A stretch of DNA of 63,440 nt, filler included, from Guillardia theta CCMP2712 (taxonomy: Eukaryota; Protista; Cryptophyta), in the NCBI RefSeq assembly GCF_000315625.1. It is 6 parts of 6 records of this genome, joined end to end, with 100 filler letters (N's around TTAATTAATTAA, not from the genome) between each part and the next. Parts side by side here need not be neighbours in the genome. Positions count along the whole stretch, not along the records: positions 50,983 to 57,409 come from NW_005434216.1; 5 more parts are not named here. The stretch is one strand, 5' to 3'. Shown here piece after piece: positions 832-57,409 of the stretch. The position numbers and the translations under genes were made by a program. Below the pieces are notes generated by a model, which had not been told where the DNA came from, ran no database searches, and worked only from the letters and a program-made list of their open reading frames with translations. The first letter of the stretch is position 1. Each line of letters begins with the position of its first letter.

Positions 832-1406
832 GGTGACAGTGTTGACTAATCTTTCGGGGAATGGAGGCCAGGAAAGGGGGTGGTTCCTGGGACGACGGGG
901 GTGCAAGAGGGCCATTCAGGGGGTAGGCTGAGTACCGGTAGTACCAGGCAATAATTGATTGTCCTACACAGTACCCGTCCTTTCTGGCATCTTTGGAGGC
1001 ACTACCCCTGAGATACATGGGGTGTAGGACTACCCCTCCTACCCATCCCCTGCAAGAAGACGGCGATGCTGGGGCCGGCACGAGGGCAGGCAGTGGGGGG
1101 AGGGAGGAAGAGGAGGAGCAGGAGACATGCGATATAAGAAGCATGATTCGAACAAGATGAAGAAAGCGATGAGACAGTGAGAAGATACTTGAGAAGTAGG
1201 ACAGATGTCAATGTTCGCCAGAAGATACTTGTGAACACAGGCGAAAGCCAGGGAGGGCAGGCTTGCAGCATATTACCTCATTGAACTTGAAGGATGTTTG
1301 CCATCAAACTGAGATCTCTTCTGCTTATCGACTCCTCCTGACTCTGACTTGTTTTCAGGTTCCCCTTACCCGACACTGCCGGCATGATCGTCAATCGTTA
1401 TCCGTT

Positions 1407-3486
1407 ATGCGCTCAGGGCCTGCTGCGGTCCTCCTCCCTCCCGCCCTCTTCAGCCGTGCCAGCAGCACGAGCTCCGTGCTTGAGGTTGCCAGGAGTGCCA
1501 GAGAGGCCGCGAGAAAGCTCGCAGCTCTACCGCTCGAGGACAGGAACGACGCGCTCAACAGGGTCGCCTCTGCCCTTGAGAACGCCAAGACGGAGATAGA
1601 GACAGCCAACAAGTCCGACTGTGAAATCGCTGCCAAGCCTGAGTCCAACGTTGCTCCTCCCCTCCAGGCTCGTCTTAAGTTTGGCGGCTCCAAGTTCCGA
1701 GACACCATCCAGGGTGTCCGGGACCTGATGAAGCTCGAGGATCCGATCGGCCGCATCCAACTCCACAGGGAGCTCGATCAAGGCCTCGTGCTCAAGAGGA
1801 AGACTGTCCCCCTCGGTGTGCTCGGCATCATCTTCGAGGCTCGTCCCGATGCTGCTGTTCAGATTGCCTCTTTGGGGATCAAGTCCGGTAACGGTGTCCT
1901 CCTCAAGTGCGGGAGGGAGGCGGTAGGAAGCTGCAGGGCCATCGTCTCGGCGATCAAGGACGGGCTCAAGACGAGCAAGGCCTCTCCTGATGTTGTTGCT
2001 CTCTTGACCACGAGGGAGGAGACCGCAGAGATGATGAAGATGAAGGAGTATGTCGATCTCATCATCCCTAGGGGATCCAACTCCTTCGTACAGTACGTCA
2101 TGCAGAACACCGACATCCCCGTCCTCGGCCATGCCGACGGCATCTGCCACATCTTCGTCGACAAGGCTGCTGAGATCCAGAAGGCTGTTGAGATCGCGAC
2201 AGACAGCAAGATCCAGTATCCCTCTGCTTGCAACGCCGTCGAAACCATCCTCGTCCATGAAGCTGTCGCCAAGCAGTTCCTCGAAGCCTTCGGCAGCCGC
2301 GCGGAGAAGGAAGGTCATAACCTGATCCTGATCCTGATCCTGATCCTGATCCTGATCCCCCTCCCCATCCTTCTGTTCTGCTCCTACTTCTTTCCTGCCT
2401 CTGCTCCTGCCCCTGCCCCTTCCCTGCTCCTGCTCCCATGTCCCCCTCCTGCTCCCGCGCCGCGTGACTGTCTAGGTGCAGGCATCGAGATCCGAGGGTG
2501 TCAGGGAACCTTGAAACACGTGAAGGGAGCCGAGGCAGTCGAGGCCGACTGGTCGACCGAGTATGGTGATAAGATCGTCTCCGTCAAGGTCTGTGACAAC
2601 CACATTCTTACCTGCTCTTCTCCTCGCTTCTCCTTCTCTTCCCTCCCCACCAGCCCCCTGCCCCCCTCCATTGATCCTCAATGCTCTTCCTCTCCTTCCA
2701 CTCTCTCTCTTTAGTCATCCCATGCTGCTCACTTCCACCTCCCCTCCCCCTCTCTTCCTCTGCGCCAATGCTGTTTGCCTCCCATCCTCTCGCTCCTCCT
2801 CCGCCCGTCGCAGGCTCCATTCGCTCACGGCCACCTATCCAGATTGTCCCCAGCATGGAGTCTGCTATGCAGCACATCAACACTTACGGGTCTCGCCACA
2901 CTGACTGCATCATCACTGAAGATGCTAGCGCTGCTGCTGTCTTCCAATCCCAGGTCATTCCCACCTCCGCTCCACCCTCCTCATCTCTTCTACTCTCCCC
3001 ATGCTTCTCCTTCCTCTCTCCTCTCACCTTCGTCTCCTTTTCTCCTTCTCGTCGCTTGCTAGCCCATGCTCTCCCTTACATGCCCTCGTCTCCAATCTTC
3101 TCCTCATCCTCGTACACTCATCCCATGTCTCATCAAGTCCTCACGCGCATACTCCCAGGTCGACGCTGCAGGCGTCTACTGGAACTGCAGCACGAGGTTC
3201 GCCGACGGCTTCCGCTATGGTTTCGGCGCCGAAGTTGGAATCTCCACCAGCATGATGCCTCCAAGAGGGCCGGTGAGAGGAGCGACAGGAAGGCTCCGGG
3301 CCTTGACTGAGAATGGCAGGTCGGGCTAGAGGGCCTGGTGACGTACCGCTACATCATGACTGGCAACGGGCACGTTGTCAAGAGCTACACCGGTGACGGT
3401 GCCAAGTGAGATGGTAGGACTGTGACGATGTTGATGCTAAGATTTGCTGCAGGCCGTTCACCCACAAGAACCTCCCGCTTCAGTGA
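1407..3486 (+). CDS. proA: Gamma-glutamyl phosphate reductase (stand-alone ProA), 6 exons
   Basis: Motifs [90 protein letters not shown]. Exons approx 1407-2313, 2482-2589, 2844-2953, 3159-3271, 3320-3405, 3453-3486. Confidence 0.96.
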
Positions 3487-8900: not shown

Positions 8901-10470
8901 GACGAGGGAGTGACGATGGTGAAGGTGATGGAGAGTGTTCGGCTGCTTCATCTGCTGTCTTGCAACGAGAAAGCTGGAGATGTGGGTAGAGAGTTGTCCT
9001 CGTTCTTGACATCTTGACGTCCTGTACAACAGATGATCGTGAAAGAAGACGGCTTCGCTGATATCTTGTTACATGCGTTCCTCTTCACAACGGACGATGA
9101 GTGAGAGGAAGATGGAGACGATGGAGATGATGATTGAGATGGAGATGATGATAATGATGGAGATGATGATGATGATGATGATGATAATGGTGGTGGTGGT
9201 GATGGTGATGATGGAGATTGAGATGATTGTGAGGAGGAGGATGTCTACTTGTAGAAGGAGGAGGAAGCTTGTTGCATTGACTTTCACCTCAGCACAGCAA
9301 CGTCCATCTGCGAGATCCTTGACAATGTTTGTCGACTTTCTCGCAGGAGGCGGAGGCTGACGGCCTGCCTAGGTGACACCCAAGGTCGAATTTTTCGATC
9401 CGGCGAAGCAGAGGAGAAAGCCCAAGGAGGGGGAAGGGGAGGAGGAGGCGAAGAGGAGGCAGGAGCTTGAGATGCAGGATCATGACGCCTTCGTGGCGCG
9501 GTTGCATGCGTTCGATGCTTTCATCGAGAAGTTTGCTGTCCTGAATGGACCAGAAATTGACCGAGTGATTGAAAGATGCATCCTAATCCTCAACGTTAAC
9601 GTACAGAGGTCTTTGAAGTCTCTCCTCTCCTCCACTCCCCTCCCCTCCGCTCTCCCCTCCTCCTCTCTCCTCTCCTCTCGCCCCCTCTTGTTCTCTTACT
9701 CTTTCCATCCCTTCCACGTCTCCTCCTTTACCTCTCCCTCTGACTTTACCTCAGTCCTCCTCCAGACTCCTCGGTCTGGTGGATGTTGGAAGTTGGGACC
9801 AGGCGGCTGTACAAGAACTGGGAGAGGATTGTGACAATAGGAGAAGGACGTTGCTCCTGCAAGGAGGATGAAGAACTGCTCTTGGCATGCACCCGAGGTG
9901 AACCAAGGGAAGCAAGAGACTAGGAGATTGGGACGAAGGACGAGGACGAGGCGGAGCAAAGAGATGAGGAGGAGGAGAGAAGGGGAGAAAGGAGGAGTCT
10001 GAGGTAGTGCGGAGCAGCAGCAGCAGAGCAGCAGCAGCAGCAGCAGGGCATTGACTGCATTCTTTGACAGGCCTGCATGTTCTGCTCCTGCACGCGATAC
10101 CGATGATGGAGGTGGTGGAGGAAGTGAGCTTGCGGATCTGGGGAACCAACGCAGAAAGTGAGGCGAGGAGAGGAACAGGGGAGGGGAGGGGGGAGTAGAA
10201 AGAGAAGGGGGAGAGGGGAAGGATGGGGAGCTGGAGCTCGAAGGAGCGAGCCAGCGAGCAAGGAGGGCGGAGGGAGGAGGGCGGAGGGCGGAGAGGGCGG
10301 AGATAGTAAGTATTTGCTGCAGAAGCACTCGTGGAGGTATGCGGGACGCTGGATGAGGTGGACTGGGAAGGGCGGGAGGTGGCGAGGAGGGTTGGGCTGC
10401 CGATAGACGAGCGGGAGATACGAATGATTGTGATGCTGCTCGAAGAGAGTCTGAGGCATGTGAACGAGGT
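6660..10470 (+). CDS. Hypothetical multi-exon protein (fragmented by gap and SSR-filled introns)
   Basis: Coding-like exons between splice sites, e.g. VYTPSELLLDMLDDDVLLNQVEEELVE, GDTLADRVTGLHVVPINLYVISTATEG, TPKVEFFDPAK...LHAFDAFIEKF. No family recognised; boundaries approximate. Confidence 0.5.
8540..8905. repeat. (GACGAG)n microsatellite, intronic, spanning a gap
   Basis: Directly visible. Confidence 0.9.
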
Positions 10471-10766
10471 GAGGAGAAATGCGGAGGAGTGAGGAAGGAT
10501 GGGACGGAGGAGAGTGTAAACGGGAAGAAGATAGAAAGTGAAGGTACGGAGATGGGAAGGATCTTCGTGAAGAGAGGGAGTGTGTGATCTCTGGACAGCA
10601 GAGTGAGAGGGAGAGAGAAGGAGGAGGAGGAGGGTATACAGAGAGCGGGTCAATCGAAGTGTAGACTACATTCATGAGCAATACAAGTGGATAAAAATAC
10701 ACAAGGCACTGGGATCCCTTTCAAACAAGAGACGAGCAGACGAAGCAACAGCTGGAGCAGGGGGCT

Positions 10767-11858
10767 TCATCCAGCAAGAGACTCCACCATCTCCCCCATG
10801 TTGTCGATGTCCAGGAACAACGACTCCATAGGCTTGCCCTCGAACGCGATCCCGTGGATGCTGTTGAACAACGGATACTCCTCCAGCTTCCCCTCCGCCT
10901 CCAGGATCTTCACAACCTCCACCGCCGTCCCCGTCCCCTGGATCTTCTGCCCGTTGAGCAGCTCCGCCTCGAGCTCGTCGAAGCTCTTCTTCCCTCCTGC
11001 CTTCACAAACGCCTCCGCGCACTTGCGGTTCCTCCCGCCGTAGCAGGTCACGATCAAGTCCGCGACCCCGCACGACTCGAAGAACGTCGCGTCCTCTACC
11101 TCCGGGTAGTGCGACTGGATGAAGCGCTTCATCTCCATCATCCCGATGCGGATGATCGCCGCCTTGGTGTTGTCGCCAAGACCCATGCCGTCCACGAAGC
11201 CGGCGCCAAGCGCAACCACGTTCTTCAGCGCTCCGCAGATCTCCACTCCCGGCACGTCCTTCCTTACCGCCACGTGGAAGTTGGGGTCGTGGAACAGGCT
11301 CTGCAGCAGGGTGCCGTTCGTCTCGTCCCGGCAACCGATGGTCGCCTCGCAGAACTGCCCCGCCGCCACCTCCGGCGCAAGGTTCGCTCCCATGAGCACG
11401 CTCATGTCCATGCCGCCCATGCCCTCCTTGATCATGTCCGAGATCAGGACCATACCCTGCTCGTCGAAGTGCACGCCCTTGATCAGTGAGATGCCGATGC
11501 AGCCGGGCGCCACGCTCGCCTTGATCTTCTCGCACAGCCCGTTGAGGAACTGGTGCGGCAGTACGAAGATGAGGATGTCGGCGTCCTTGGTCGCGCTGCA
11601 GATGTCCGGGTCGGCCACGACGTTGTGAGGGAGCTTCTGGCCCGGCATGTACTTGGGGTTCTCGTGGTCTTGGTTGATGATGTCCGTGAGCTTACGGCCG
11701 TTGACCGTCTCCTCGAACACCCACTGCTTCACGGTTGAGTGAAAGGTGTCCAAACGCTGGCAGTTCCGTCCGATGATCCTGGCGATTGCGCTACCCCAAG
11801 CACCAGAGCCAACGATAGCAACTTGTTTGCGCTGATCGAATTCACGCGTCCTCTTCAT
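10767..11858 (-). CDS. GPD1: NAD-dependent glycerol-3-phosphate dehydrogenase, intronless
   Basis: VAIVGSGAWGSAIA, HENPKYMPG, FVLPHQF, ISLIKG, GANLAPEV, CGALKNVVA, ESCGVADLIVTCYGGRN, GQKIQG. Confidence 0.97.
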   Translation of the reverse strand: MKRTREFDQRKQVAIVGSGAWGSAIARIIGRNCQRLDTFHSTVKQWVFEETVNGRKLTDIINQDHENPKYMPGQKLPHNVVADPDICSATKDADILIFVLPHQFLNGLCEKIKASVAPGCIGISLIKGVHFDEQGMVLISDMIKEGMGGMDMSVLMGANLAPEVAAGQFCEATIGCRDETNGTLLQSLFHDPNFHVAVRKDVPGVEICGALKNVVALGAGFVDGMGLGDNTKAAIIRIGMMEMKRFIQSHYPEVEDATFFESCGVADLIVTCYGGRNRKCAEAFVKAGGKKSFDELEAELLNGQKIQGTGTAVEVVKILEAEGKLEEYPLFNSIHGIAFEGKPMESLFLDIDNMGEMVESLAG

Positions 11859-14562
11859 TGTTTGCGATATAGAACTGAGATCCTCAAAGTATCCTCAAAG
11901 TTTCACGAAGTTTTGCTGCTGGCAATGCGTCACGAGTCTGATACACGATGTAGCTCGACGTTTTCTAGCGGTTTCTGGTAACTGTAGCAAACAAGCAGTT
12001 GTCTGTCTCTGTTGTCACGTTCTCTTCTGGTGTTGCCCGTGCCACAACCTTGTCCTTCTGCTTTCTGAGATCCCGCCATGCTCCCGCCCCTCTCTTATAT
12101 ACCCTTCTGTTCCCCCACCCCACCCTCTTTACACCCCACCATTACCCTACCCTTCCTAGTCCATAACCTACCCCAACTTTGCTACTACCCTTGACCCCTT
12201 CACCCCACTCAAGGAATCCAAATTGTGGACTACCCACCTCGAACACCTGAAAATGTACCCTACCATACGAAAACTAGACCCCTTCAGGACCATCGACCAC
12301 CACCGGTTATACTCCGAACCTTCATTCTAGAACGATTGCTTTACAGTACCGGTGTTAGCTACTACCTCATACCCACCATTTTACAGACAGCCACTTACCC
12401 CGACCATGTACACTCTTTGACTACCCCTACCCCCAACTTTGGGAAAAAGAATCATACTACCGGGTCCTATTACGCTTTGATCATTTGCACCTACCCTCTT
12501 GGATTATCCACCCCTCGTAGAGTACCCCTCACCCTCAGAGGAAATGATTTACTAGTTGTTCATAACCCACCCCCCAAAGTCCATGTCACCATGGCACGAT
12601 CAGAGGGTGGTAGGGTGGACCACAGAAGGTACGAGAAGGCAACTCCTCAAAGTGGTCAAATTGGTGAGTTGATGATTGTGATAAGGGGGTACTTGTCATG
12701 GGGGGTAGATCATTGTGAGTCTGAGCACCGGGTAGTTGAAGGTCAAATCACCGGGTAGAGAAGAGAGGAAAGAGGGTGTTATTGGTTTTCGTGGGGTGGG
12801 TAAACGGGGATGCTGCATGGCCGGGGCATGGCCCCGTTTTTAAACAAGCAACGTTTCGTTACAAGGCTGAAATGGCGGCAAGCTCAAAAAGGTCATGTCA
12901 GAATACACCGGTACTTGAAGGTGAATTTTGGCTCTGAGATACAGGTGGGTCTGACTACCCCCGTGCCAAATGTGTGGAATTTCTGCAACAAAAAGCGCCA
13001 ACTTTCTTTGGAATATGCATTGCGTCCCCTCAATACCACCCTTCAAGTATTCTAGAATCCTGTGATAAAGCACCCCTCCTTTTTGACCCTACATGGGGGT
13101 CAACTCCGAAGGGGGTCATCTGGAGTGGTCAAAGGCTGGTCAAAAGGAAGGTGCAACTTGCCCACTACGATTAACTTGTGGTCAAACCGAGGGAACCCAC
13201 AACCGGTCAAACTGAAGTAGTAAAATAGTAGTCACCGAGTGGTCAAACCTTGCGACCCCAGCGGCGGGGGCGACTGCTCGTGTCCCCTGGGTTTTGACCG
13301 CAGCCAAAACTGGTGCAGGTCAAACTTGCGGTCAAACGCCAGCGCCCCCGGGGACCCGGTAGGGCCATGGCGGGGACATGGTCCGGCGTTTCAATTTGAA
13401 AACGAAATGCGGCTAGTCGCTTTCACAGGTCGAGTAAAATTTCAACTTGGGCGCGGCTTCGGCTTGCATCCTGCCAGTGTCGGTCACGGAGTCCGCCAGT
13501 GAGTGACGGCCCCGGCGGCCGGTAGCGGCCGCAGTGAGTCAGAGAGCCCGGCGCAATGATACGGTAGTTTGCCAGACCGTCTCCGAGGCTCAGTGTCATC
13601 AACTGGCAAGTTGTGCCCGGCCGGGCCGGGGGGCCGGGCCGCCGGGCCGGCCCAGCCTACTACCCGGCAGTCGGTTCCGAATGTCTAGCCGCAGTGAGGC
13701 CCCGTGGCTTACTAAATCACTGTTAGTACTGCGGCCCGGCCCCCGTACCGTGACCACCGTACCGTACCGCCGGTACTGTCCGAGTCGGCGACGTGAGTCA
13801 CGCCACTGTGACCGTACTATACCGGCGTAGGCCCCCCGCTAACTGAGCCCGGGCTAACCGAACGGAAGTTTGACTCGGCCGCGCACCGTGAGCGGTCGGC
13901 CGGGCCGGGGGGGCCGCGGGCCGGCCCGGCCGCAGTGCCGGACGGTGAACCCGTCCCGATCGGACTGACACGCCCGGCCGGGCCGCCGGAACCCGGGCCC
14001 CGGACTCCGACTCCTGGGCTCAGCCCCTGGCAGGCCCAGCGGCAGACCGGTCTTCAACCGGGCGACTCGGGGTGACTCGCACGGTACGGTACGGTCACCG
14101 AGCCCCTGGCAGAGACAGCCTGTGAGCCTCTGGCTCAGGGCTGCGCCGAAGTTCACTAGAACACAACTTGAGCACGACAGAGGCTACTCCGGACTCCGCT
14201 GTCCGGCGGCTAGGACATGCCATGATGAAACCTATTTCCCAAGTTCCCTACAGTGACACGTGCGGCGGGGCACTGGTGTGCCGCTGGACGGTGCGGTGTG
14301 ATGAACGAGTCTGTCATGATCAAGTTGACGGTCCGATCCGGTGTCACGTGTGTACAACACTCAGTCCGGAGTCCGGAGTGGCCCACATTCAATGATTGCC
14401 ACAGGAGGTATAGAATTTTGTAGCGACATGTCAATAACATAGAGGAGCAATGGTTTACAGTTGTGATGTTGTGAATGTATACAATTCCCAGATGAATCGT
14501 GCCTGTGAACCAAGAAAAGTTGTTGTAGTTTCTGCCAAGTTTCCTGCTGATATCATGTGCAG

Positions 14563-15582
14563 TTACAACCCGAGATCAGACTGGAACCCCCAAGAGTTAA
14601 AAGTTCGGTTCCTCTCCTGGTACTTGAAGCAGAGAGCGTTCATATGGTTCGGCGAGCACGCGTTTGCCTTGTCGCAAACCCACACCTCCTCCTTCCCAAT
14701 GATCATCTCCGCTCCCAGACCGCCGATAGAGAATGTCCCCTTTTCCTCCAAGATCGTATCCCAGGATACGTCGATGGTACACGCTGACTTTTCTGGGCAC
14801 AGCCAAGTCGCAGGGCAGGCGAACACTTGCTTGTGCAATGAAAACATGTCTAGCTCGCCAGCGCATCCCGCCCTTCCTCCCGGTTGACCGATGGGCCAGC
14901 TCAATCTTTCGGAGCAGTTCTGCGCACTATCATCGTATGGATTAAGATGTATGCCCGCAGTTGGAGAGAAACCAACACTGTATGTGGGATGATTGTAGAA
15001 GAAAGTTCCTGGCACGACCTCTGTCGCTGTCCAGGTGTTGATGTACGACATCAGCGCGCTTGTGGGGATCATTGCTGACAGGATGACTTGGTTGCCACGT
15101 GCGGTGTTTGCAGCTGCAAGCACAAGATTCGGCCAGTATGCGCACCTTGTCAAATCATCTTCTGTAACGGTGTCGGAATAAGGTTTGTCCATACAAAGAG
15201 AGCATGCGCTGTAAATGCTATTTGCCATGTTGAGCTTGATGCCCTGAACAGAGGAGGAGCAGAGATGATCTCGTTCGATGGATAGGCAGTCACTTGAGCA
15301 CCCGTCTCCATTCCTTGTGTTCCCGTCGTCACACAGCTCAGTTGGACTTAGGAAGCCATCTCCACAGACGTTCCTATCTCCAGCTGGAGATGCGGACGGC
15401 GCTGATGGTGAGGGTGTGGTTGATGGAAAGAGAGATTGTGCTGTAGTAGTTGCGAGAACAGATGAAGAGGAGGAGTATGCGTCATACTGCTGCAATCTGC
15501 AGGCCAACAGGTCAAGATCGAATGGAGGACTCGGGCAAGGTGCTAGCGAACCTGCGACCGCCGGGCTCATTCTGGGCATCAT
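14563..15582 (-). CDS. Cys-rich protein with Myxococcus cysteine-rich repeat (DUF4215-like), copy 1; probably has extra exons
   Basis: [32 protein letters not shown] matches the CGDG..E.CDDGN....DGCS..C..E repeat. Confidence 0.75.
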
Positions 15583-17612
15583 TTTTCTGGCATCAGGGGA
15601 ATGTCAGAGGAACAGCCCATGGACATCAACGTTTCTTACGCTGTTTGCTGTGCTAGAGCATAGGAGAGGGAGGAGGAGGAGGAGGAGGAGGAGCGCTTTG
15701 AAAGAGAACGATGCAGCATGCATTGTGAAAGTCTCTACTCGAGTCTTCCAGACCCACCCTTCTAGACTCTACCCCCTGCAAACCTGACCCCACCCTTGCT
15801 GTGGTGACTGACTGTGTCCCTTCATGCATACCCCACCCATCATTATGTAGTATGAAATACCGGTGATGAGTACAAATAAGCCACCCCACCGATTCACCGA
15901 TTCACAACATCTCATCTATAACCCACCCCCTCGCCATCACTCACTTTTTTACCAGCCCAGCTGCTAACTTACAAAAAAAAGCATTGAGCTCATAAGGGCG
16001 CTAACTTAAAAAGGGTTATACTTCACGAAAAAAAAAGAGGCGCATTTTATTACTGTTGTAGGACGTATTTACTGGTACAAAAGGACTGTACCGGATATCC
16101 AGAGATTCCACTCAAGTTCCACGACAATCATGGTACACATGCCTGGTACAAATTTGTACCAGGTCTTTCACACTTAGCCATTTCGGCGTTGCTTTCATGG
16201 CGGATCGTTGCGGTTGCGCATTCGCCTTGGTCAGGTACTTGTGGGCGTCGGAACACCTCCTCACCCATCACATGACCCCTGAATCCAGGCTCCCGATCTT
16301 CCCTCCAAGTATCAAGACGACAGCTCAAATTCAAGGTTGACTTGCCTTTGAAGTCCGATAGTGCTCAAGTCGCACATGCTGGCTTTGCTCATGGTTTGAC
16401 TGTCCCGTCTCGGACTTGCACTGAACCGTCACAGCCTTGCACTCCAGTGTGCAGACAATTCACTGATGGTGGTGGGAACGTTGTCATCACGTTGTCATCA
16501 CTCATCAATATGCAGCATCTAGATGTGGTCAATGCCAAAGAAGTAACATCTCTCCAATCATGATAAACCCCTGAGCTTCAAACTCCATTTCACCCCTCAT
16601 TCGCCCCCATGATCATGAATCTGTACCTCATTTGCCCCCATGATCATGAACCTGTAACACCTGACGATATGCATTACTGTGGAATATGGTTGACACGCAA
16701 CGTTCCTTTTGGAACATAACTGACCCTGAATCCAGCTTGGCATCAGTGCATGAAAATCCATAATGCCGTACATGACAATATGCACTCCACAGATCATGTT
16801 TAGCTTGTCATCAAGACAGTGATTCATGCGAATGTCTCCTCCATCACCATCCATCACCAACATGCCAGATGGCAGCTGATGCCACGGCATCTCACAACCT
16901 CAACTCCAACAAAGCATACTCCGGCATCCCTTCCCTGTCACATTATCCACCATCCCCTTGATTTGCAGTGCAGTATGATACCTGATCAACTGCATTGTCT
17001 GTTGCTCTCATTGTCATCATCATCCCAAAAAGTACCCTTGAGTATATCACAACCTACCATCGCTTTGGCATCGTAGCGAGACTCATTCTTTCCAACATTC
17101 CATTTCCACATGAGGGCTTAACACAGATGTATCAACTCAACAATGATTTCATTCAGGAACGAACTGTAAATTCTCTACACTACGTGCTCTGGAGAATGTC
17201 TGCATACGTCCTTTGTCCACTCTCACTATTTCTATTCGCCTCTACCTGATGTGGCAGGGGTCCACAATTGTAACTGTGGTCTCGANNNNNNNNNNNNNNN
17301 NNNNNNNNNNNNNNNNNNNNNNNNNNNNNNNNNNNNNNNNNNNNNNNNNNNNNNNNNNNNNNNNNNNNNNNNNNNNNNNNNNNNNATCCGGTGTCACGTG
17401 TGTACAACACTCAGTCCGGAGTCCGGAGTGGCCCACATTCAATGATTGCCACAGGAGGTATAGAATTTTGTAGCGACATGTCAATAACATAGAGGAGCAA
17501 TGGTTTACAGTTGTGATGTTGTGAATGTATACAATTCCCAGATGAATCGTGCCTGTGAACCAAGAAAAGTTGTTGTAGTTTCTGCCAAGTTTCCTGCTGA
17601 TATCATGTGCAG

Positions 17613-21528: not shown

Positions 21529-22019
21529 NNNNNNNNNNNNNNNNNNNNNNNNNNNNNNNNNNNNNNNNNNNNTTAATTAATTAANNNNNNNNNNNNNNNN
21601 NNNNNNNNNNNNNNNNNNNNNNNNNNNNTCCTCCTCCTCCTCCTCCTGTTCAGCGCCGACTGTTTATCCCCCCCCATCTTTTACTCCTACCACGATGAAT
21701 GTTCGATCTCCTTAAATCTCTAGCTCGAGCCCTTTGCTAGGCGTTCATTCCCACCGCCAGCCCTTCAGTCCAGGTCTCCCTCCCTCCCTCCACCCTCCCT
21801 CCCTCCACCCTGGAGCGAGAATGTCATCCCACAAGGAAACTCGACAAGAGAGTTGACACGGCAGGGAGAGCAAGAGGACGATTCGGAAGAGATGAAGCAA
21901 GAGTAGAGGATAGAGGTGAACAACGAGAAGGAGGGAGGAAGAGGAGGGAAGGGTAAGAGGGAAGTAGAGGTAGGAACGAGAGGTGGAAGGGAGAGGTGGA
22001 GGATAAAGGCTGATCTTAC

Positions 22020-22299
22020 AGCTCATCAACTATCTTTCCCATCGACGTCTCCAGCACGACGAAAGGAGCCTCTTGCTCGGTCACGATGATGCTACAGCAA
22101 AGTGAGATGTCTCCTCCTCCTCCCCTCCTGCTCCTTCTCCCCTGCTCCTCCTCCCCTCCCTTCCCCTCCCTCCTTCTCCTCCTCTCGCCCCTCCCCCTTC
22201 CCCCGCTCCATCCTCCCCCTTCTCTCCTCCTCACGTGCTGCTGCCGGAGACCAGAGCTCCGGTATGATGAGCCTCCGCCAACGCAAGGGCTTGTTCCAT
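22020..22299 (-). CDS. Cyclophilin (PPIL1-like) N-terminal exons; remainder lost at the gap
   Basis: Exon EQEAPFVVLETSMGKIVDEL followed by a GTAAG donor matches the cyclophilin start V.LETSMG.I..EL. Confidence 0.65.
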
Positions 22300-23745
22300 G
22301 TTGACCTGCACGGAGGCTGAGGAGACAGCAGGGAGAGTGAAGCAAAGAGGAGGATAGAATGAGCGCGAGTGTATCCCTTGTACCATCGCCTCTTCTCTTC
22401 ATCAAATGTCTTCTAGCTGCTCTCCTGCTCTTCTCGACCTCTCTCTCTCTCATCCTTTCCTGATCAGCCACTCTCGTTGGATTTTCCCCTTTCTCCTCAG
22501 GGGAAGCAACCCAGCATGTCTATGTTTCTCGTCGTCGCAATATCTGAGAACAAATTCTTCCATGTCCATCCTTCCTCATACGTAGGAATCACAGGTGTCA
22601 TGGCAATACAGATTACTTGGTTTTTTGGCCAGGATTATCGATACGCAAATGCAAAAAAGCTTATCTTGCTTGACTCGTTCTTGATTCACTGGCTCTATCG
22701 ATATGAAATGATCCAAATCTTCAAATCACCTATTATCCATTTCCTGCCCTTCCTTTCCCTCCTCTCCCTTTCAAACTACCCTCCTGGCACCCGATCCCGG
22801 TTCCTGTCCCTGTCCTCTCTCTCTCTTTCTCCCTCACTCCCTCTCCCTCCTCCTCCCATCCCTCCTCGTCCAGTCTCCCTGCATGCTGCCCCTCGTGGCA
22901 TTGACCCCTCATCCCCGCACAATATTTATTCATCTCCCTCGTACACATTGTGCCCACATCCCCTCTCAGTCCTAGGGCTTAGTACACCTGTTGGAGTACA
23001 CCACCTGTACTTTTAGTGACTCCTTGCAGGGTACTCCGGGTCCTATTTAGAGCATATGAAGTCCTAGAGTATTGGTACATATGAAGGTCATAGGAGCAAT
23101 AGTAAGGCAAGAGTTCTTCGGGGCAAACAGGCTTGTATATACTAATATGTTGACTAGTACCCCCAATTTACAGGTCTTAAGGAGGGGTATCAGAGCAAAA
23201 GTCAAAAACAAAATTGTTTCCGACGTTGGAAGTACTCCACCGTCGTTGAAGCCTTCGGGGTGCATGTGAAATGGTGGGTGGTGATAGAGAGTTTGCTTGG
23301 GAAAAGAAGGGGTAGTATGAAGGAGAGAAGATCCGGGGACCGGGTTGGCTGGTCCTCAGAAGGGTAGGGGTACTCTTTTTTTTGAGTTCTTGCAAGATGT
23401 AGAGCGAGGACGGGGAGTGACCGAAGATGTACATGAGGGGAAGCCGGCGAAGAGGGAGAGGGAGAGGGAGAGGGAGAGGGAGAGGGAGAGGGAGAGGGAG
23501 AGGGAGAGGGAGAGGGAGAGGGAGAGGGAGAGGGAGAGGGAGAGGGAGGAGGGAGGAGGGAGGAGGGAGGAGGGGAGGAGGGAGAGGGAGGAGGGAGAGG
23601 GAGGAGGGAGAGGGAGGAGGGAGGAGGGAGGAGGGAGGAGGGGANNNNNNNNNNNNNNNNNNNNNNNNNNNNNNNNNNNNNNNNNNNNNNNNNNNNNNNN
23701 NNNNNNNNNNNNNNNNNNNNNNNNNNNNNNNNNNNNNNNNNNNNT

Positions 23746-50982: not shown

Positions 50983-53900
50983 CCGGGTCACGGACCCTGT
51001 CAGCCGCTGACATGTCACGGGCTGCTGACACGTCGCTGACCGGTCACGCAGCAGAGAGATCAGGCCCCGGCCAATCTCCGGACACTTAGCTCTGGCGGGC
51101 CTCCAGGTGGTCTGAGTCGGGGCTGAAGGCTGCAGTCGGTCTACTGACGGGCCCGGCCGGCAGGATCCGTCGAGAAACAGGGGGGTCAAGGGAGGTTTTC
51201 TTCCCCCTGGGAGAAATGTCCTATGGGTTTTTGGATCTGCGATATAAAAAAGTCTTGTCTCGGTCACGTGATGTGTCACGTGACCGGTCAGGTGAGCCTG
51301 TCAGCCGGGTCACGGCCCCTGTCAGCCGGCTGACATGTCACGGGCCTGCTGACACGGTCCGCTGACCGGTCACGGCCGCCCGGAGAGATCAGGCCCCCGG
51401 CCAATCTCCGGACACTTAGCCTCCTGGCGGGCCTCCAGGGGGTCTGAGGCGAGGCTGAAGGCTGCAGTCGGTCTACTGACCGGCCCGGCCGGCAGGATCC
51501 GTCGAGAAACAGGGGGGTCAAGGGAGGTTTTCTTCCCCCTGGGAGAAATGTCCTATGGGTTTTTGGATCTGCGATATAAAAAAGTCTTGTCTCGGTCACG
51601 TGATGTGTCACGTGACCGGTCAGGTGAGCCTGTCAGCCGGGTCACGGACCCTGTCAGCCGGCTGACATGTCACGGGCCTGCTGACACGGTCCGCTGACCG
51701 GTCACGGCCGCCCGGAGAGATCAGGCCCCCGGCAATCTCCGGACACTTAGCCTCCTGGCGGGCCTCCAGGGGGTCTGAGGCGGGGCTGAAGGCTGCAGTC
51801 GGTCTACTGACGGGCCCGGCCGGCAGGATCCGTCGAGAAACAGGGGGTCAAGGGAGGTTTTCTTCCCCTGGGAGAAATGTCCTATGGGTTTTGGATCTGC
51901 GATATAAAAAGTCTTGTCTCGGTCACGTGATGTGTCACGTGACCGGTCAGGTGAGCCTGTCAGCCGGGTCACGGCCCCTGTCAGCCGGCTGACATGTCAC
52001 GGGCCTGCTGACACGGTCCGCTGACCGGTCACGGCCGCCCGGAGAGATCAGGCCCCCGGCCAATCTCCGGACACTTAGCCTCCTGGCGGGCCTCCAGGGG
52101 GTCTGAGGCGGGGCTGAAGGCTGCAGTCGGTCTACTGACGGGCCCGGCCGGCAGGATCCGTCGAGAAACAGGGGGGTCAAGGGAGGTTTTCTTCCCCCTG
52201 GGAGAAATGTCCTATGGGTTTTTGGATCTGCGATATAAAAAAGTCTTGTCTCGGTCACGTGATGTGTCACGTGACCGGTCAGGTGAGCCTGTCAGCCGGG
52301 TCACGGACCCTGTCAGCCGGCTGACATGTCACGGGCCTGCTGACACGGTCCGCTGACCGGTCACGGCCGCCCGGAGAGATCAGGCCCCCGGCCAATCTCC
52401 GGACACTTAGCCTCCTGGCGGGCCTCCAGGGGGTCTGAGGCGGGGCTGAAGGCTGCAGTCGGTCTACTGACCGGCCCGGCCGGCAGGATCCGTCGAGAAA
52501 CAGGGGGGTCAAGGGAGGTTTTCTTCCCCCTGGGAGAAATGTCCTATGGGTTTTTGGATCTGCGATATAAAAAAGTCTTGTCTCGGTCACGTGATGTGTC
52601 ACGTGACCGGTCAGGTGAGCCTGTCAGCCGGGTCACGGACCCTGTCAGCCGGCTGACATGTCACGGGCCTGCTGACACGGTCCGCTGACCGGTCACGGCC
52701 GCCCGGAGAGATCAGGCCCCCGGCCAATCTCCGGACACTTAGCCTCCTGGCGGGCCTCCAGGGGGTCTGAGGCGGGGCTGAAGGCTGCAGTCGGTCTACT
52801 GACCGGCCCGGCCGGCAGGATCCGTCGAGAAACAGGGGGGTCAAGGGAGGTTTTCTTCCCCCTGGGAGAAATGTCCTATGGGTTTTTGGATCTGCGATAT
52901 AAAAAAGTCTTGTCTCGGTCACGTGATGTGTCACGTGACCGGTCAGGTGAGCCTGTCAGCCGGGTCACGGACCCTGTCAGCCGGCTGACATGTCACGGGC
53001 CTGCTGACACGGTCCGCTGACCGGTCACGGCCGCCCGGAGAGATCAGGCCCCCGGCCAATCTCCGGACACTTAGCCTCCTGGCGGGCCTCCAGGGGGTCT
53101 GAGGCGGGGCTGAAGGCTGCAGTCGGTCTACTGACCGGCCCGGCCGGCAGGATCCGTCGAGAAACAGGGGGGTCAAGGGAGGTTTTCTTCCCCCTGGGAG
53201 AAATGTCCTATGGGTTTTTGGATCTGCGATATAAAAAAGTCTTGTCTCGGTCACGTGATGTGTCACGTGACCGGTCAGGTGAGCCTGTCAGCCGGGTCAC
53301 GGACCCTGTCAGCCGGCTGACATGTCACGGGCCTGCTGACACGGTCCGCTGACCGGTCACGGCCGCCCGGAGAGATCAGGCCCCCGGCCAATCTCCGGAC
53401 ACTTAGCCTCCTGGCGGGCCTCCAGGGGGTCTGAGGCGGGGCTGAAGGCTGCAGTCGGTCTACTGACCGGCCCGGCCGGCAGGATCCGTCGAGAAACAGG
53501 GGGGTCAAGGGAGGTTTTCTTCCCCCTGGGAGAAATGTCCTATGGGTTTTTGGATCTGCGATATAAAAAAGTCTTGTCTCGGTCACGTGATGTGTCACGT
53601 GACCGGTCAGGTGAGCCTGTCAGCCGGGTCACGGACCCTGTCAGCCGGCTGACATGTCACGGGCCTGCTGACACGGTCCGCTGACCGGTCACGGCCGCCC
53701 GGAGAGATCAGGCCCCCGGCCAATCTCCGGACACTTAGCCTCCTGGCGGGCCTCCAGGGGGTCTGAGGCGGGGCTGAAGGCTGCAGTCGGTCTACTGACG
53801 GGCCCGGCCGGCAGGATCCGTCGAGAAACAGGGGGGTCAAGGGAGGTTTTCTTCCCCCTGGGAGAAATGTCCTATGGGTTTTTGGATCTGCGATATAAAA

Positions 53901-56900
53901 AAGTCTTGTCTCGGTCACGTGATGTGTCACGTGACCGGTCAGGTGAGCCTGTCAGCCGGGTCACGGACCCTGTCAGCCGGCTGACATGTCACGGGCCTGC
54001 TGACACGGTCCGCTGACCGGTCACGGCCGCCCGGAGAGATCAGGCCCCCGGCCAATCTCCGGACACTTAGCCTCCTGGCGGGCCTCCAGGGGGTCTGAGG
54101 CGGGGCTGAAGGCTGCAGTCGGTCTACTGACCGGCCCGGCCGGCAGGATCCGTCGAGAAACAGGGGGGTCAAGGGAGGTTTTCTTCCCCCTGGGAGAAAT
54201 GTCCTATGGGTTTTTGGATCTGCGATATAAAAAAGTCTTGTCTCGGTCACGTGATGTGTCACGTGACCGGTCAGGTGAGCCTGTCAGCCGGGTCACGGAC
54301 CCTGTCAGCCGGCTGACATGTCACGGGCCTGCTGACACGGTCCGCTGACCGGTCACGGCCGCCCGGAGAGATCAGGCCCCCGGCCAATCTCCGGACACTT
54401 AGCCTCCTGGCGGGCCTCCAGGGGGTCTGAGGCGGGGCTGAAGGCTGCAGTCGGTCTACTGACGGGCCCGGCCGGCAGGATCCGTCGAGAAACAGGGGGG
54501 TCAAGGGAGGTTTTCTTCCCCCTGGGAGAAATGTCCTATGGGTTTTTGGATCTGCGATATAAAAAAGTCTTGTCTCGGTCACGTGATGTGTCACGTGACC
54601 GGTCAGGTGAGCCTGTCAGCCGGGTCACGGACCCTGTCAGCCGGCTGACATGTCACGGGCCTGCTGACACGGTCCGCTGACCGGTCACGGCCGCCCGGAG
54701 AGATCAGGCTCCGGACACTTAGCCTCCTGGCGGGGCCTCCAGGGGGGTCTGAGGCGGGGCTGAAGGCTGCAGTCGGTCTACTGACGGGCCCGGCCGGCAG
54801 GATCCGTCGAGAAACAGGGGGGTCAAGGGAGGTTTTCTTCCCCCTGGGAGAAAGGTCCTATGTTCCAGCTCTCCTACATCTATTACAGGAAGCTCCAGGA
54901 CCTCTACCTCACCAGCGAGGTCTACAACGGCTACGCCCACGCCGACGACAACTCGTACGACAACAACTACAAGATCTCGCTCACCGACCCCGTGCCGATG
55001 GACAACGGCAGCTACCCCTCCCTGACGGGCATCACGGACCTGTTCCAGCAGGTGGAGAGCTACATCATGAGCGGGGACATCCAGAATGGCTACTTCCCCC
55101 CGAACTCGGGCGTCAACCGCACGGAAAAGGCCCTGAGGTCCTTCTCCATGACGTCGCAGGGCAGCGGCTTCCTCACCCTTGGCTCCTCGTACTTCGACGC
55201 CTCCCTGGGCGTGCTGCAGTACACGCTGCCGAATCTCGCCTCCAGCTTCCTGAACAGCGACCTCGACCGTATCCTGGCGAGCGTGCTGCAGTCGGACGAG
55301 ACCCTGGAGGACTGGACCTACAACGGGCTGCAGTACGAGTACAGTGCTTTCCAGAGCTACTCCTCCCTCGCGGACAACGCCCGGGGGGTGATGCGGCAGA
55401 CCAAGTGTCTCAACGTGAAATTCATCACGAAAGAGCCCGACGTCTCGCAGAACTTCATCGACCCGGTGGTGCAGCTCTGTGCTATCGACGGCTCCTGCCG
55501 CTCCGTGGACATCTGCCCCTCCGCCCCGAGCTACGACGCGAGGACGGGCCAGAGCTGCGACCTGCTGCACGACTCGCTCAACGACAACTGCACCACCAAG
55601 TACGTCCACCTCATGGAGTACCTGAGCGGGCAGGGCATCGTGATGCAGACGCACTGCAAGCAGGACCTCTTCGTCCGCGATTTGTACACCAACCCCTCCC
55701 TCACCGTCCAGCAGGTCTCCAACATCGACCTCCCGACGGCCAACCCCGCCGGCACCATCTGCCTCCGCACGGACTCGACCTGCCTGCAGGACAAGGGGCT
55801 GGGCGGCGCTTCGATCGACGTGAGCGCGGTGCGGTCCACCCTCGGCGTGGACGTCTACACCTTCTACCGCCCGATGACCGACTACAGCGGCGACCCCAAC
55901 TCTGACACCTTCTACGGCGAGCTCTACCAGAAGAACTCCACGGGCTGGTACCCGGCCTGGATCGACTGCTACAACGTCTCGGGCCTGAACAAGTCGCGGC
56001 TGATGTCCTGGACCGGCTGGGACCCTGCGCGGGTCGCCGCGGTGAAGGACACCCTTCTCGGGCGGGAGCATGGCTACGGCTCCACCCCCGACCTCAGCGT
56101 GCTGGGCCGCGAGGCGGTGTGGAGCGACGCCTCCTACCGCCCCACGGGCTTCAGCTACCGCTGCGGGACGTCGTCCTGCGTGGGCAGCAACGGGGAGACG
56201 GTCCAGTGCCCCGGGGGGCTGTGCAACGTGGCGGTCCAGGGCGCCGCGGTCCACGCCGTGGCGGTGGCGCTGAGCAACAGCTCGGTCTACTTCTGCGCCA
56301 GCGGGGTGGCGGAGGCGCTGGTCCTGTGCCCCGCCCGCCTGACGAACGACAGCGTGCTGGTGGAGGTGAGGAACAACCTCTGGTACTGCAAGGCCGACTG
56401 CCAGCGCGCCGTGCTGCTCAAGTACATCGGCAAGCACTCCTTCCGGTACAGGACGCTGGTGGAGGGCGTGCTGGGCTTCACCGCCTCGGACCGGAACCAG
56501 ATCGGGCTCAGCCCGACGAGCAACGCGGCCAACGGGTACTCGCAGAAGGACGCCTTCCGGCTGGTGCACTGGCTGGTCTCCAGGCAGGTGCTCGGGTCGG
56601 GCAAGGCCCTGCCGGGTGCCATCTACAACAGCTTCTGGACGCCGCCCGACGGCTTCAGCTCCACCTACATGTCGCGGCACTCGCTCTACCCGTACACGAC
56701 CCTGACCCTCTACGACTACGTCAACTACGTCTCGCAGGCGGCCACGATGCGGAGCCAGCCGCTCTCGACCTGCATCAACCAGCCCGTCACGATCAACAAC
56801 TGCGACAACCAGCACACCACCAGCCTGGCCTCCTGTGTCTCCGCCCTGAAGCGCGCCTCGGCCTACACCGCCGGGCCGGGCGAGGCGGTGCTGGTCCGGC

Positions 56901-57409
56901 TGACGGCCCTGCAGCTCACCTCCCCGTACCTGATGCACTGGGCCGACGCCAGCAGGCCCTCCCGTGACCAGTTCGTCGACTGGCTGCTGAGCCCCACCCG
57001 CTGCGCCGAGACCCTGCAGTCCGAGGCGGTGTGCTAAAAAAAAAAAACACTTAGCCTCCTGGCGGGCCTCCACTGGCAGGGGGTCTGAGGCGGGGCTGAA
57101 GGCTGCAGTCGGTCTACTGACGGGCCCGGCCGGCAGGATCCGTCGAGAAACAGGGGGGTCAAGGGAGGTTTTCTTCCCCCTGGGAGAAATGTCCTATGGG
57201 TTTTTGGATCTGCGATATAAAAAAGTCTTGTCTCGGTCACGTGATGTGTCACGTGACCGGTCAGGTGAGCCTGTCAGCCGGGTCACGGCCCCTGTCAGCC
57301 GGCTGACATGTCACGGGCCTGCTGACACGGTCCGCTGACCGGTCACGGCCGCCCGGAGAGATCAGGCCCCCGGCCAATCTCCGGACACTTAGCCTCCTGG
57401 CGGGCCTTC
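50983..57409. repeat. 332-bp GC-rich tandem array (~11.7 units, insert, ~1.1 units); both ends in gaps
   Basis: Unit starts (tcaggtgagcc) at 51288, 51620, 51947, 52279, 52611, 52943, 53275, 53607, 53939, 54271, 54603 and 57261; units nearly identical. Confidence 0.98.
54860..57037 (+). CDS. 725-aa intronless Cys/Tyr/Ser-rich ORF inserted in the tandem array; probable captured fragment of a larger gene
   Basis: Uninterrupted ORF with near-exclusive C/G third positions; ATG coincides with the repeat's gtcctATG; stop is T plus an A12 run. Confidence 0.85.
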   Translation: MFQLSYIYYRKLQDLYLTSEVYNGYAHADDNSYDNNYKISLTDPVPMDNGSYPSLTGITDLFQQVESYIMSGDIQNGYFPPNSGVNRTEKALRSFSMTSQGSGFLTLGSSYFDASLGVLQYTLPNLASSFLNSDLDRILASVLQSDETLEDWTYNGLQYEYSAFQSYSSLADNARGVMRQTKCLNVKFITKEPDVSQNFIDPVVQLCAIDGSCRSVDICPSAPSYDARTGQSCDLLHDSLNDNCTTKYVHLMEYLSGQGIVMQTHCKQDLFVRDLYTNPSLTVQQVSNIDLPTANPAGTICLRTDSTCLQDKGLGGASIDVSAVRSTLGVDVYTFYRPMTDYSGDPNSDTFYGELYQKNSTGWYPAWIDCYNVSGLNKSRLMSWTGWDPARVAAVKDTLLGREHGYGSTPDLSVLGREAVWSDASYRPTGFSYRCGTSSCVGSNGETVQCPGGLCNVAVQGAAVHAVAVALSNSSVYFCASGVAEALVLCPARLTNDSVLVEVRNNLWYCKADCQRAVLLKYIGKHSFRYRTLVEGVLGFTASDRNQIGLSPTSNAANGYSQKDAFRLVHWLVSRQVLGSGKALPGAIYNSFWTPPDGFSSTYMSRHSLYPYTTLTLYDYVNYVSQAATMRSQPLSTCINQPVTINNCDNQHTTSLASCVSALKRASAYTAGPGEAVLVRLTALQLTSPYLMHWADASRPSRDQFVDWLLSPTRCAETLQSEAVC

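Follow-up and report, generated by a model that had tools for sequence, protein, structure and literature searches.

An A-tailed fragment of a giant virus-like gene in a 332-bp satellite array of Guillardia theta, probably derived from RNA

How does an open reading frame of 725 codons come to interrupt a homogeneous tandem array in a unicellular alga? The locus in question belongs to the Guillardia theta CCMP2712 assembly (GCF_000315625.1), record NW_005434216.1, and occupies positions 50983-57409 of the window, a stretch of 63,440 nucleotides in which six parts from six records of this genome are joined end to end; positions below count along the window unless a record or locus is named. The piece is a complete unplaced contig of 6,427 bp and consists of satellite and a single insert. 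The best explanation overall, which we favor with moderate confidence, is that a fragment of a virus-like gene entered the satellite as reverse-transcribed RNA, and that the open reading frame (ORF) it created is accidental and silent. The features on which the argument depends are the following.

50983-54708, no strand assigned: satellite array, about 11.2 units (Tandem Repeats Finder, anchor spacings, depth)
Within each 332-bp unit: a half called the module (ACACTT...CCTATG, unit positions 2-147) and a palindromic half rich in GTCACG/CTGACA
54709-54862, plus strand: left flanking module copy, ending in CCTATG at unit position 147
54860-54862, plus strand: repeat-derived ATG, in frame with the insert by a 1-in-3 chance
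54860-57037, plus strand: ORF of 725 codons (ORF listing)
54863-57035, plus strand: 2.17-kb insert, almost certainly from the interior of the gene for a giant orphan protein (homology; open throughout)
57036-57047, plus strand: run of twelve A's (A12), after which the repeat follows from (A)CACTTAGCC
57048-57198, plus strand: right flanking module copy, resuming at unit position 2-3 (ACACTTAGCC)
57199-57409, no strand assigned: satellite to the contig end, comprising the palindromic half and the start of the next module (sequence)

Tandem Repeats Finder describes 50983-54862 as an array with a period of 332 bp, 11.8 copies and 98% identity, and 7 of 12 anchor spacings within it are exactly 332. 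An initial annotation of this DNA had reported the 332-bp array, a 725-codon ORF that opens on the repeat's own ATG at 54860, the A12 run and a repeat that resumes at ACACTT, and all of these are present in the sequence. The same annotation considered the ORF to be an intact gene captured by the array, and on this point our findings lead elsewhere. The ATG is that of the repeat's GTCCTATG (the canonical unit reads GTCCTATGGGTTTTT at this site), and the stop codon TAA is composed of T57035 and the first two A's of the tail, so that start and stop both appear to be accidents of the joins. Although the frame is indeed open, it belongs to a much longer coding sequence whose homologs extend past both of its ends, and the description as a captured gene does not hold.

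The extent of that longer sequence can be seen in its relatives. In a search of 5.8 billion proteins, the only close relative is the product of a Hanusia phi transcript (P0002, 59% identity), in which residue 58 aligns with ORF residue 2, leaving at least 57 residues further upstream. An exhaustive search added two longer proteins. Residues 1-403 of P0003 (2,169 aa) match ORF residues 328-725 at 61% identity, and this protein extends 1,766 aa beyond the last residue of the ORF (...QSEAVC, residue 403 of P0003); similarly, residues 3499-3767 of P0005 (5,533 aa) match ORF residues 452-725. In the metagenomic contig L002, the homologous DNA at 1178-3371 lies inside a frame that runs from position 797 or earlier to 8672, and homology also continues upstream of the insert's start. 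Because relatives continue beyond both ORF ends, we are nearly certain that the insert is an internal slice of a giant gene, whose protein is a cysteine-rich orphan of about 2,800 to more than 6,400 aa. The giant protein has no match in Pfam, the PDB sequences or the ESM Atlas, where its own model (predicted local distance difference test score, pLDDT, 0.29) gave no usable matches, and a search for relatives of the ORF in IMG/VR returned no confirmed match.

The homologous region of L002 is itself continuous, without introns, and broken by one frameshift; the intronless state of the insert, previously listed as a mark of retroposition, is therefore uninformative. The giant frame changes over a span of 7 nt at L002 2005-2013, and gene calling yielded three separate products from it (210, 465 and 2,169 aa); either a sequencing error or a real frameshift could account for this change. 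Further members of the family in G. theta comprise a C-terminal part in scaffold JH993240, a fragment in JH993006 (L001) and a divergent paralog contig in the reads. The L001 fragment (9992-10776) is degraded and corresponds to ORF residues 12-240 at 72% nucleotide identity; it contains a 106-nt AT-rich interruption and a frameshift, is annotated as XP_005831162 (182 aa), and adjoins a Zn-cluster gene on one side and an ammonium transporter gene on the other. A satellite-like motif upstream of this fragment was dropped as a candidate, with a local alignment score of 26 vs 28 for the best shuffle.

What points to RNA is the 3' end of the slice. A12 sits in a context of 63-66% GC, exactly at the sense 3' end of the coding fragment. 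Past the break point, after ...AVC, relatives continue as YVTGDD (TAC GTG ACC) or as FKYDN, with nothing A-rich, and since they do so the run is, judged by these homologs, a non-templated tail in the sense orientation. T57035 corresponds to the first base of the codon that follows in relatives. The edges of the run are ambiguous, as the first A is perhaps templated (TAC in relatives) and the last is perhaps the repeat's. Because the fragment ends in this non-templated run, RNA-derived entry is the most likely route, and we consider an RNA intermediate reasonably probable. The initial annotation had likewise proposed reverse transcription; the tail favors that proposal, whereas the arguments it drew from introns and from a target duplication are unsupported.

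The supposed duplication concerns the segment ACACTT...CCTATG, which does flank the ORF on both sides (54715-54862 and 57047-57198), as described earlier, but in copies that are not identical. The left copy lacks 12 bp at its upstream edge (54708/54709), carries two additional G's and has a T>G change at 54853, and the right copy has a private 6-bp insertion, CTGGCA, at 57073-57078; an alignment of the two copies shows two 1-bp indels of G, a single 6-bp indel and one T/G substitution. In the reads, for which we used two independent DNA runs, X1 and X2 (2011 and 2021; X1 has 0.91 of the sampled words), the extra G at 54732 is carried by X1 contigs with a summed depth of about 11,900, so that this variant of the left copy represents a satellite subfamily and not a private change. 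The flanking copies are different variants and not simple duplicates of one unit. Given that the array stops at unit position 147 and resumes at 2, a 146-bp duplication would look the same as the loss of about 185 bp (+ n x 332), and a target-site duplication (TSD) is not established. Under the deletion reading, the insert takes the place of exactly the palindromic half.

Support from the reads differs between the two junctions of the insert, the right one being bridged in both runs and the left one unbridged. The right junction, comprising ORF, A-run, repeat and 6-bp insertion, is spanned by X1 record 5 (56372-57099) and X2 record 14 (56695-57106). The bridging X1 unitig is at single-copy depth (54) and leads from the ORF through the 6-bp insertion to 57099; the tail is one A shorter in X2, as a 454 homopolymer error would produce. 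In 39 X1 contigs, a loose end at 57407 runs on as canonical repeat. One further contig in each run (X1 depth 139, X2 depth 9.3) matches only three islands of the insert, 55188-55232, 55736-55790 and 56341-56398, with joints that skip 503 and 550 nt and a depth 2.3-2.6 times that of the ORF. The three islands encode the most conserved motifs of the family (GVLQY.LPN, NPAG..CLRTDS.CLQD and VRNNLWYCK.DC), and the island-only contig is probably a divergent paralog with 2.3-2.6 times the copy number of the ORF.

The target of the insertion is a very abundant repeat. Summed contig depth, which is not copy number, amounts to about 0.8-1.65 million on the satellite vs 54-61 on the ORF in X1, and to about 7,000-28,000 vs 3.6 in X2; of the order of 10^4 copies of the 332-bp unit must nevertheless exist. 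Its canonical form is 99.4% identical to arrays in G. theta scaffold JH993240 (BLAST against fetched loci) and was not found in the JGI metagenome contigs or in IMG/VR. The identity with JH993240, like the occurrence of the stretch in the DNA runs of 2011 and 2021, agrees with an origin in G. theta. The non-canonical junctions (HACACTTAGCC...) are also absent from the JGI metagenome contigs, a result that is uninformative as the canonical unit is missing there too. The two halves of the unit were folded separately: the palindromic half gives z = -5.2 and -5.4 on the two strands, and the module gives z = -1.8, no better than shuffles, for which reason a small-RNA-derived origin of the module was rejected. 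The unit contains the motifs TATAAAAAAG and CCAAT and two CACGTG boxes, and a homology search with its own 107-codon ORF (GTG start) gave no match.

Some further observations concern the satellite. At 54209-54393 (unit positions 148-332), we found nested palindromes, GGTCACGTGA-TGTG-TCACGTGACC, together with a longer imperfect one. In one unit at 51700-52069, five homopolymers (runs of C, G, C, T and A) are 1 base short, a pattern typical of weakly supported 454 or long-read sequence rather than of real variants. In a run with another organism label (X12), the 332-bp unit occurs as a circular unitig of 362 nt, 100% identical and at a depth of 130; its match to one satellite unit is located at 54394-54597 and 57226-57383. 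Moreover, about 0.10-0.11 of the sampled words (approximately one unit) occur in about 12 other-organism runs and one freshwater metagenome, and either carry-over of G. theta DNA (prey, co-culture, contamination) or a satellite common to several taxa could explain this.

Regarding the source of the insert, its gene neighborhood in related DNA suggests a virus. L002 is densely packed, with genes on both strands; the giant gene, read without introns, is followed by small ORFan genes, and one gene passes the Pfam Herpes_UL92 model (29.3 bits vs a cutoff of 21). Relatives of the UL92-like protein at 60-62% are G. theta GUITHDRAFT_122062, located in JH993240, and two Hanusia transcripts. The order of giant-gene C-terminus, UL92-like gene and 123-aa gene is kept in JH993240, where the C-terminus is 70-73% identical to P0003 residues 1438-2169 and the giant gene is 5'-truncated and split by a 2.76-kb element. 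JH993240 carries a decayed endogenous copy of the cluster, interleaved with satellite. The G. theta assembly is listed, in a published screen, among genomes with mirusvirus capsid homologs (PMC10827195). Pfam recognized no capsid, portal or terminase in L002-L006, no structure-based search having been made, and the mirusvirus papers searched make no mention of UL92. Altogether, the source of the insert is probably virus-like, and the cluster is plausibly mirusvirus-derived.

The 2.76-kb insertion (L003 5582-8362; JH993240 record 12922-15702) is AT-rich (45% GC), has no long ORF and is bounded by perfect 20-bp terminal inverted repeats (CATTACGTCATGATCTTGAA); it is a non-autonomous DNA transposon. 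A DDE_Tnp_4 transposase gene is present at the left end of JH993240.

These elements can be assembled into a proposed sequence of events. The giant virus-like gene would have given rise to a transcript that lacked both of its ends and acquired a tail within the coding region. After reverse transcription, the product would have been joined to the array either by target-primed reverse transcription (TPRT) or by capture of the cDNA while a break was being repaired in the palindromic half of a unit, which is prone to form cruciforms. Capture of cDNA at a break seems slightly more likely than TPRT; in a repair of this kind, which we infer, the insert would replace the palindromic half, with the array running to 147 and resuming at 2. 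As stated in the initial annotation, the insert brings no reverse transcriptase (RT) or endonuclease of its own: Pfam detects no such domain in the ORF, in an antisense ORF or in the other frames.

Several observations weigh against this explanation. The putative nick site (bottom strand, GGCTAAGTGT/CCGGAG) differs from the TTTT/AA of long interspersed nuclear element 1 (L1). No parent copy of at least 90% identity that overlaps the insert ends was seen in the reads, and the left junction is without read support, with a gap at 54863-54981 in X1 and at 54798-55100 in X2, although a filter removes some records and a gap proves nothing. The viral, and especially the mirusvirus, assignment draws on gene density, synteny and a single Pfam domain. 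No decay is visible in the ORF, an open frame with a GC content at third codon positions (GC3) of 0.97, no stops or frameshifts, and a short terminal branch in the family tree (0.19 vs 0.34-0.38 for expressed Hanusia paralogs), so it would be either young or constrained. Finally, virus-like DNA meets satellite in JH993240 without A-tails, and joining at the DNA level could explain the insert as well.

A 784-codon ORF on the minus strand (54719-57073), with no Pfam family, spans the whole insert as a result of the 97% GC content of third codon positions. A GC3 this high leaves frames open even in the absence of selection.

Joining at the DNA level is the alternative that survives best, even though we regard it as unlikely. 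It holds that viral DNA integrated in satellite heterochromatin was fragmented and re-joined by end-joining or recombination, with A12 as filler. Consistent with this, at least five junction ends between the virus-like cluster and satellite in JH993240 have no A-tail, and in one place synteny with L002 is lost 20 codons into a gene, with unit position 146 of the satellite immediately adjoining. The transposon insertion likewise marks the region as a decaying patchwork, and flanking module copies of different variants would be expected from recombination between units. What decides in favor of RNA-derived entry is the tail, as a pure run of 12 A's at the sense 3' end is very unlikely to be random filler.

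The distribution of junctions raises a second alternative, in which joining is preferred near unit positions 136-147 (between CCTAT and G) and at the module start, where foreign, virus-derived nucleic acids would enter repeatedly, and the arrays would act as a sink or archive. To place the junctions, we surveyed this contig and about 28 kb of JH993240, which contains satellite arrays at record 21818-23311 and from 28455 onward and partial units at record 21286-21111 (unit positions 303-146) and 9842-10040 (unit positions 287-136). Four right ends of satellite fall at unit positions 147 (window) and 146, 136 and 325 (JH993240), and the left ends fall at 2, 303 and 287; all seven lie outside the palindromic core. 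The right ends at 136, 146 and 147 adjoin three different partners on two contigs, and the probability of such clustering is about 0.003, or about 0.01 when the fourth is counted, in a post hoc test on two contigs. The JH993240 junction after CCTAT (146), compared with 147 in the window, is an independent junction of virus-like DNA and satellite at the same unit position.

This shared position is a weak lead toward the earlier idea that different cargo joins the repeat at recurrent sites: the JH993240 junction agrees with it, but no second junction of an A-run with ACACTT was found in the roughly 28 kb of JH993240, and the array has one insert in 12 units. Under a stronger form of the idea, the palindromic half, which could be a programmed or fragile break site, would be a recurrent point of breakage and joining that captures virus-derived DNA or cDNA at 136-147, and the satellite would be an archive of infection. 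The partners on the block side are virus-like or within a virus-like block. However, the right ends are not identical and the left ends are scattered, the seven ends come from two contigs, no integrase, RT or nuclease accompanies the array, which yields practically no RNA, and there is no pile-up of loose ends at those positions among the ends listed (17,000 contigs). We therefore consider position-specific capture improbable, in this form as in the milder one. If true, a multi-megabase satellite would archive nuclear infections by large DNA viruses, possibly feeding a small-RNA defense similar to clusters of PIWI-interacting RNA (piRNA).

Additional details were noted around the partial units of JH993240. 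Those at L003 2502-2700 and 13771-13946 bracket a virus-like block of about 11 kb in inverted orientation; their position-136 and position-146 ends face the block, and each is co-oriented with its downstream gene. That a JH993240 partial unit is a simple insertion into a gene was rejected, as the ORF on the far side is unrelated to the rest of the gene. Satellite position 325 and a partial unit starting at 303 are separated, at L003 13947-14477, by 530 bp of non-satellite DNA that contains a 152-codon ORF without a known family. This block is thus flanked by a TSD-like direct duplication of 23 bp of satellite sequence, and it has no A- or T-run at its ends.

A further concern, compatible with any of the other readings, is that the left junction may be an assembly artefact and that the 5' end of the ORF truly joins other sequence. 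Contigs are missing on 54863-54981 in X1 and X2 alike, 54982 is precisely the first base of the X1 unitig, X1 contains 0.91 of the sampled words as mentioned above, and the first array units show homopolymer-length errors of the kind found in weakly supported sequence. Nevertheless, the first 40 codons past the ATG are a true continuation of the protein family and the right junction is solid in two runs; the missing contigs on the first 120 nt of the insert may reflect dense paralog branching, which could yield unitigs too short to place, a strain difference or an assembly problem. We accordingly regard an artefactual left junction as improbable.

The weakest proposal, a functional chimeric gene in which promoter, leader and ATG come from the module, the stop comes from the tail and a 725-aa product is made and under selection, can appeal to the 725 open codons, the high GC3 and short branch, the CCAAT and TATAAAAAAG motifs and the module copies upstream of, and co-oriented with, genes at two places in JH993240, but it is highly improbable given that only about 7 RNA reads among 19.8 million records fall on this locus (several of them probably from paralogs, and two or three on the repeat), that the product is a headless and tailless slice without signal peptide or 3' untranslated region (UTR), that an in-frame ATG arises 1 time in 3, and that high GC3 keeps even the antisense frame open. 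The ORF is a side product of the insertion with practically no transcription, rather than a functional gene that the array captured.

Comparison with known systems places the insert closest to sequences that reached DNA through RNA. Precedents for retrocopy formation and cDNA capture include retrocopies mediated by long interspersed nuclear elements (LINEs), Ty1 cDNA at double-strand breaks and L1 insertions with target deletions. The insert shares with them a non-templated sense 3' A-tail, 5' truncation, the lack of RT and endonuclease, a repetitive target, and a target duplication or, equally, a target deletion. It differs in that its RNA was also 3'-truncated in the coding region, leaving no stop codon and no 3' UTR, that its source looks viral rather than a host gene, that no L1-type nick motif is present, that a TSD is not demonstrable in a tandem array, and that no parent copy of at least 90% was seen. 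Bornavirus-like N elements, which are endogenous viral elements (EVEs) derived from viral mRNA and integrated by LINE machinery, offer another parallel: a virus-derived coding fragment with a poly(A) tail and an open frame in host DNA. Here, in contrast, the fragment would come from a DNA virus or an endogenous copy of one, the host is a unicellular alga, the target is a satellite and there is no clear TSD. With endogenous mirusvirus and giant-virus elements, the family shares its position in a dense, ORFan-rich cluster with a Herpes_UL92-type gene and the decayed JH993240 copy; the insert, unlike them, is a 2.2-kb tailed slice of one gene and not a block of viral genome.

Site-specific non-long terminal repeat (non-LTR) retrotransposons also occupy tandem arrays, as do R1/R2 in ribosomal DNA (rDNA) and SLACS/CRE/CZAR in spliced-leader (SL) arrays. 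The resemblance consists of an A-tailed insert in a homogeneous tandem array; the insert has no RT/endonuclease ORF, repeated insertion at one nick site was not seen, and this array does not consist of rRNA or SL RNA genes. The spliced leader of G. theta and Hanusia is CTCGGCGGCTGGTCAAG (PMC5619915). A spliced-leader array was considered and rejected: CTCGGCGGCTGGTCAAG is missing from the repeat even with 3 mismatches, CCTATG is followed by GG and not GT, Rfam gives only chance matches at E = 0.6, and there is almost no RNA. Nor did the initial suggestion of an integron- or CRISPR-like cassette system survive, as there is one insert in 12 units, eleven uninterrupted units precede it, the cargo is a gene fragment with no integrase or nuclease domain, and the locus has almost no RNA. 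In sum, the insert behaves like a retrocopy fragment or captured cDNA and like an EVE derived from RNA.

For G. theta, these findings mean that the 725-aa "protein" predicted here is an artefact, a slice of a giant gene with a start from satellite and a stop from a poly(A) tail. They also reveal a very abundant 332-bp satellite that is barely represented in the assembly of this genome, and pieces of a virus-like, probably mirusvirus-derived, cluster embedded in that satellite, at least one of which seems to have arrived via RNA. As it stands, the insert amounts to a commonplace retro-insertion or EVE fragment located in repetitive DNA, and only the interleaving of satellite with virus-derived DNA and the clustered junctions are worth following up genome-wide. 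If the clustering holds across the genome, it would tie the fragility of a satellite to the capture of viral sequence in a protist.

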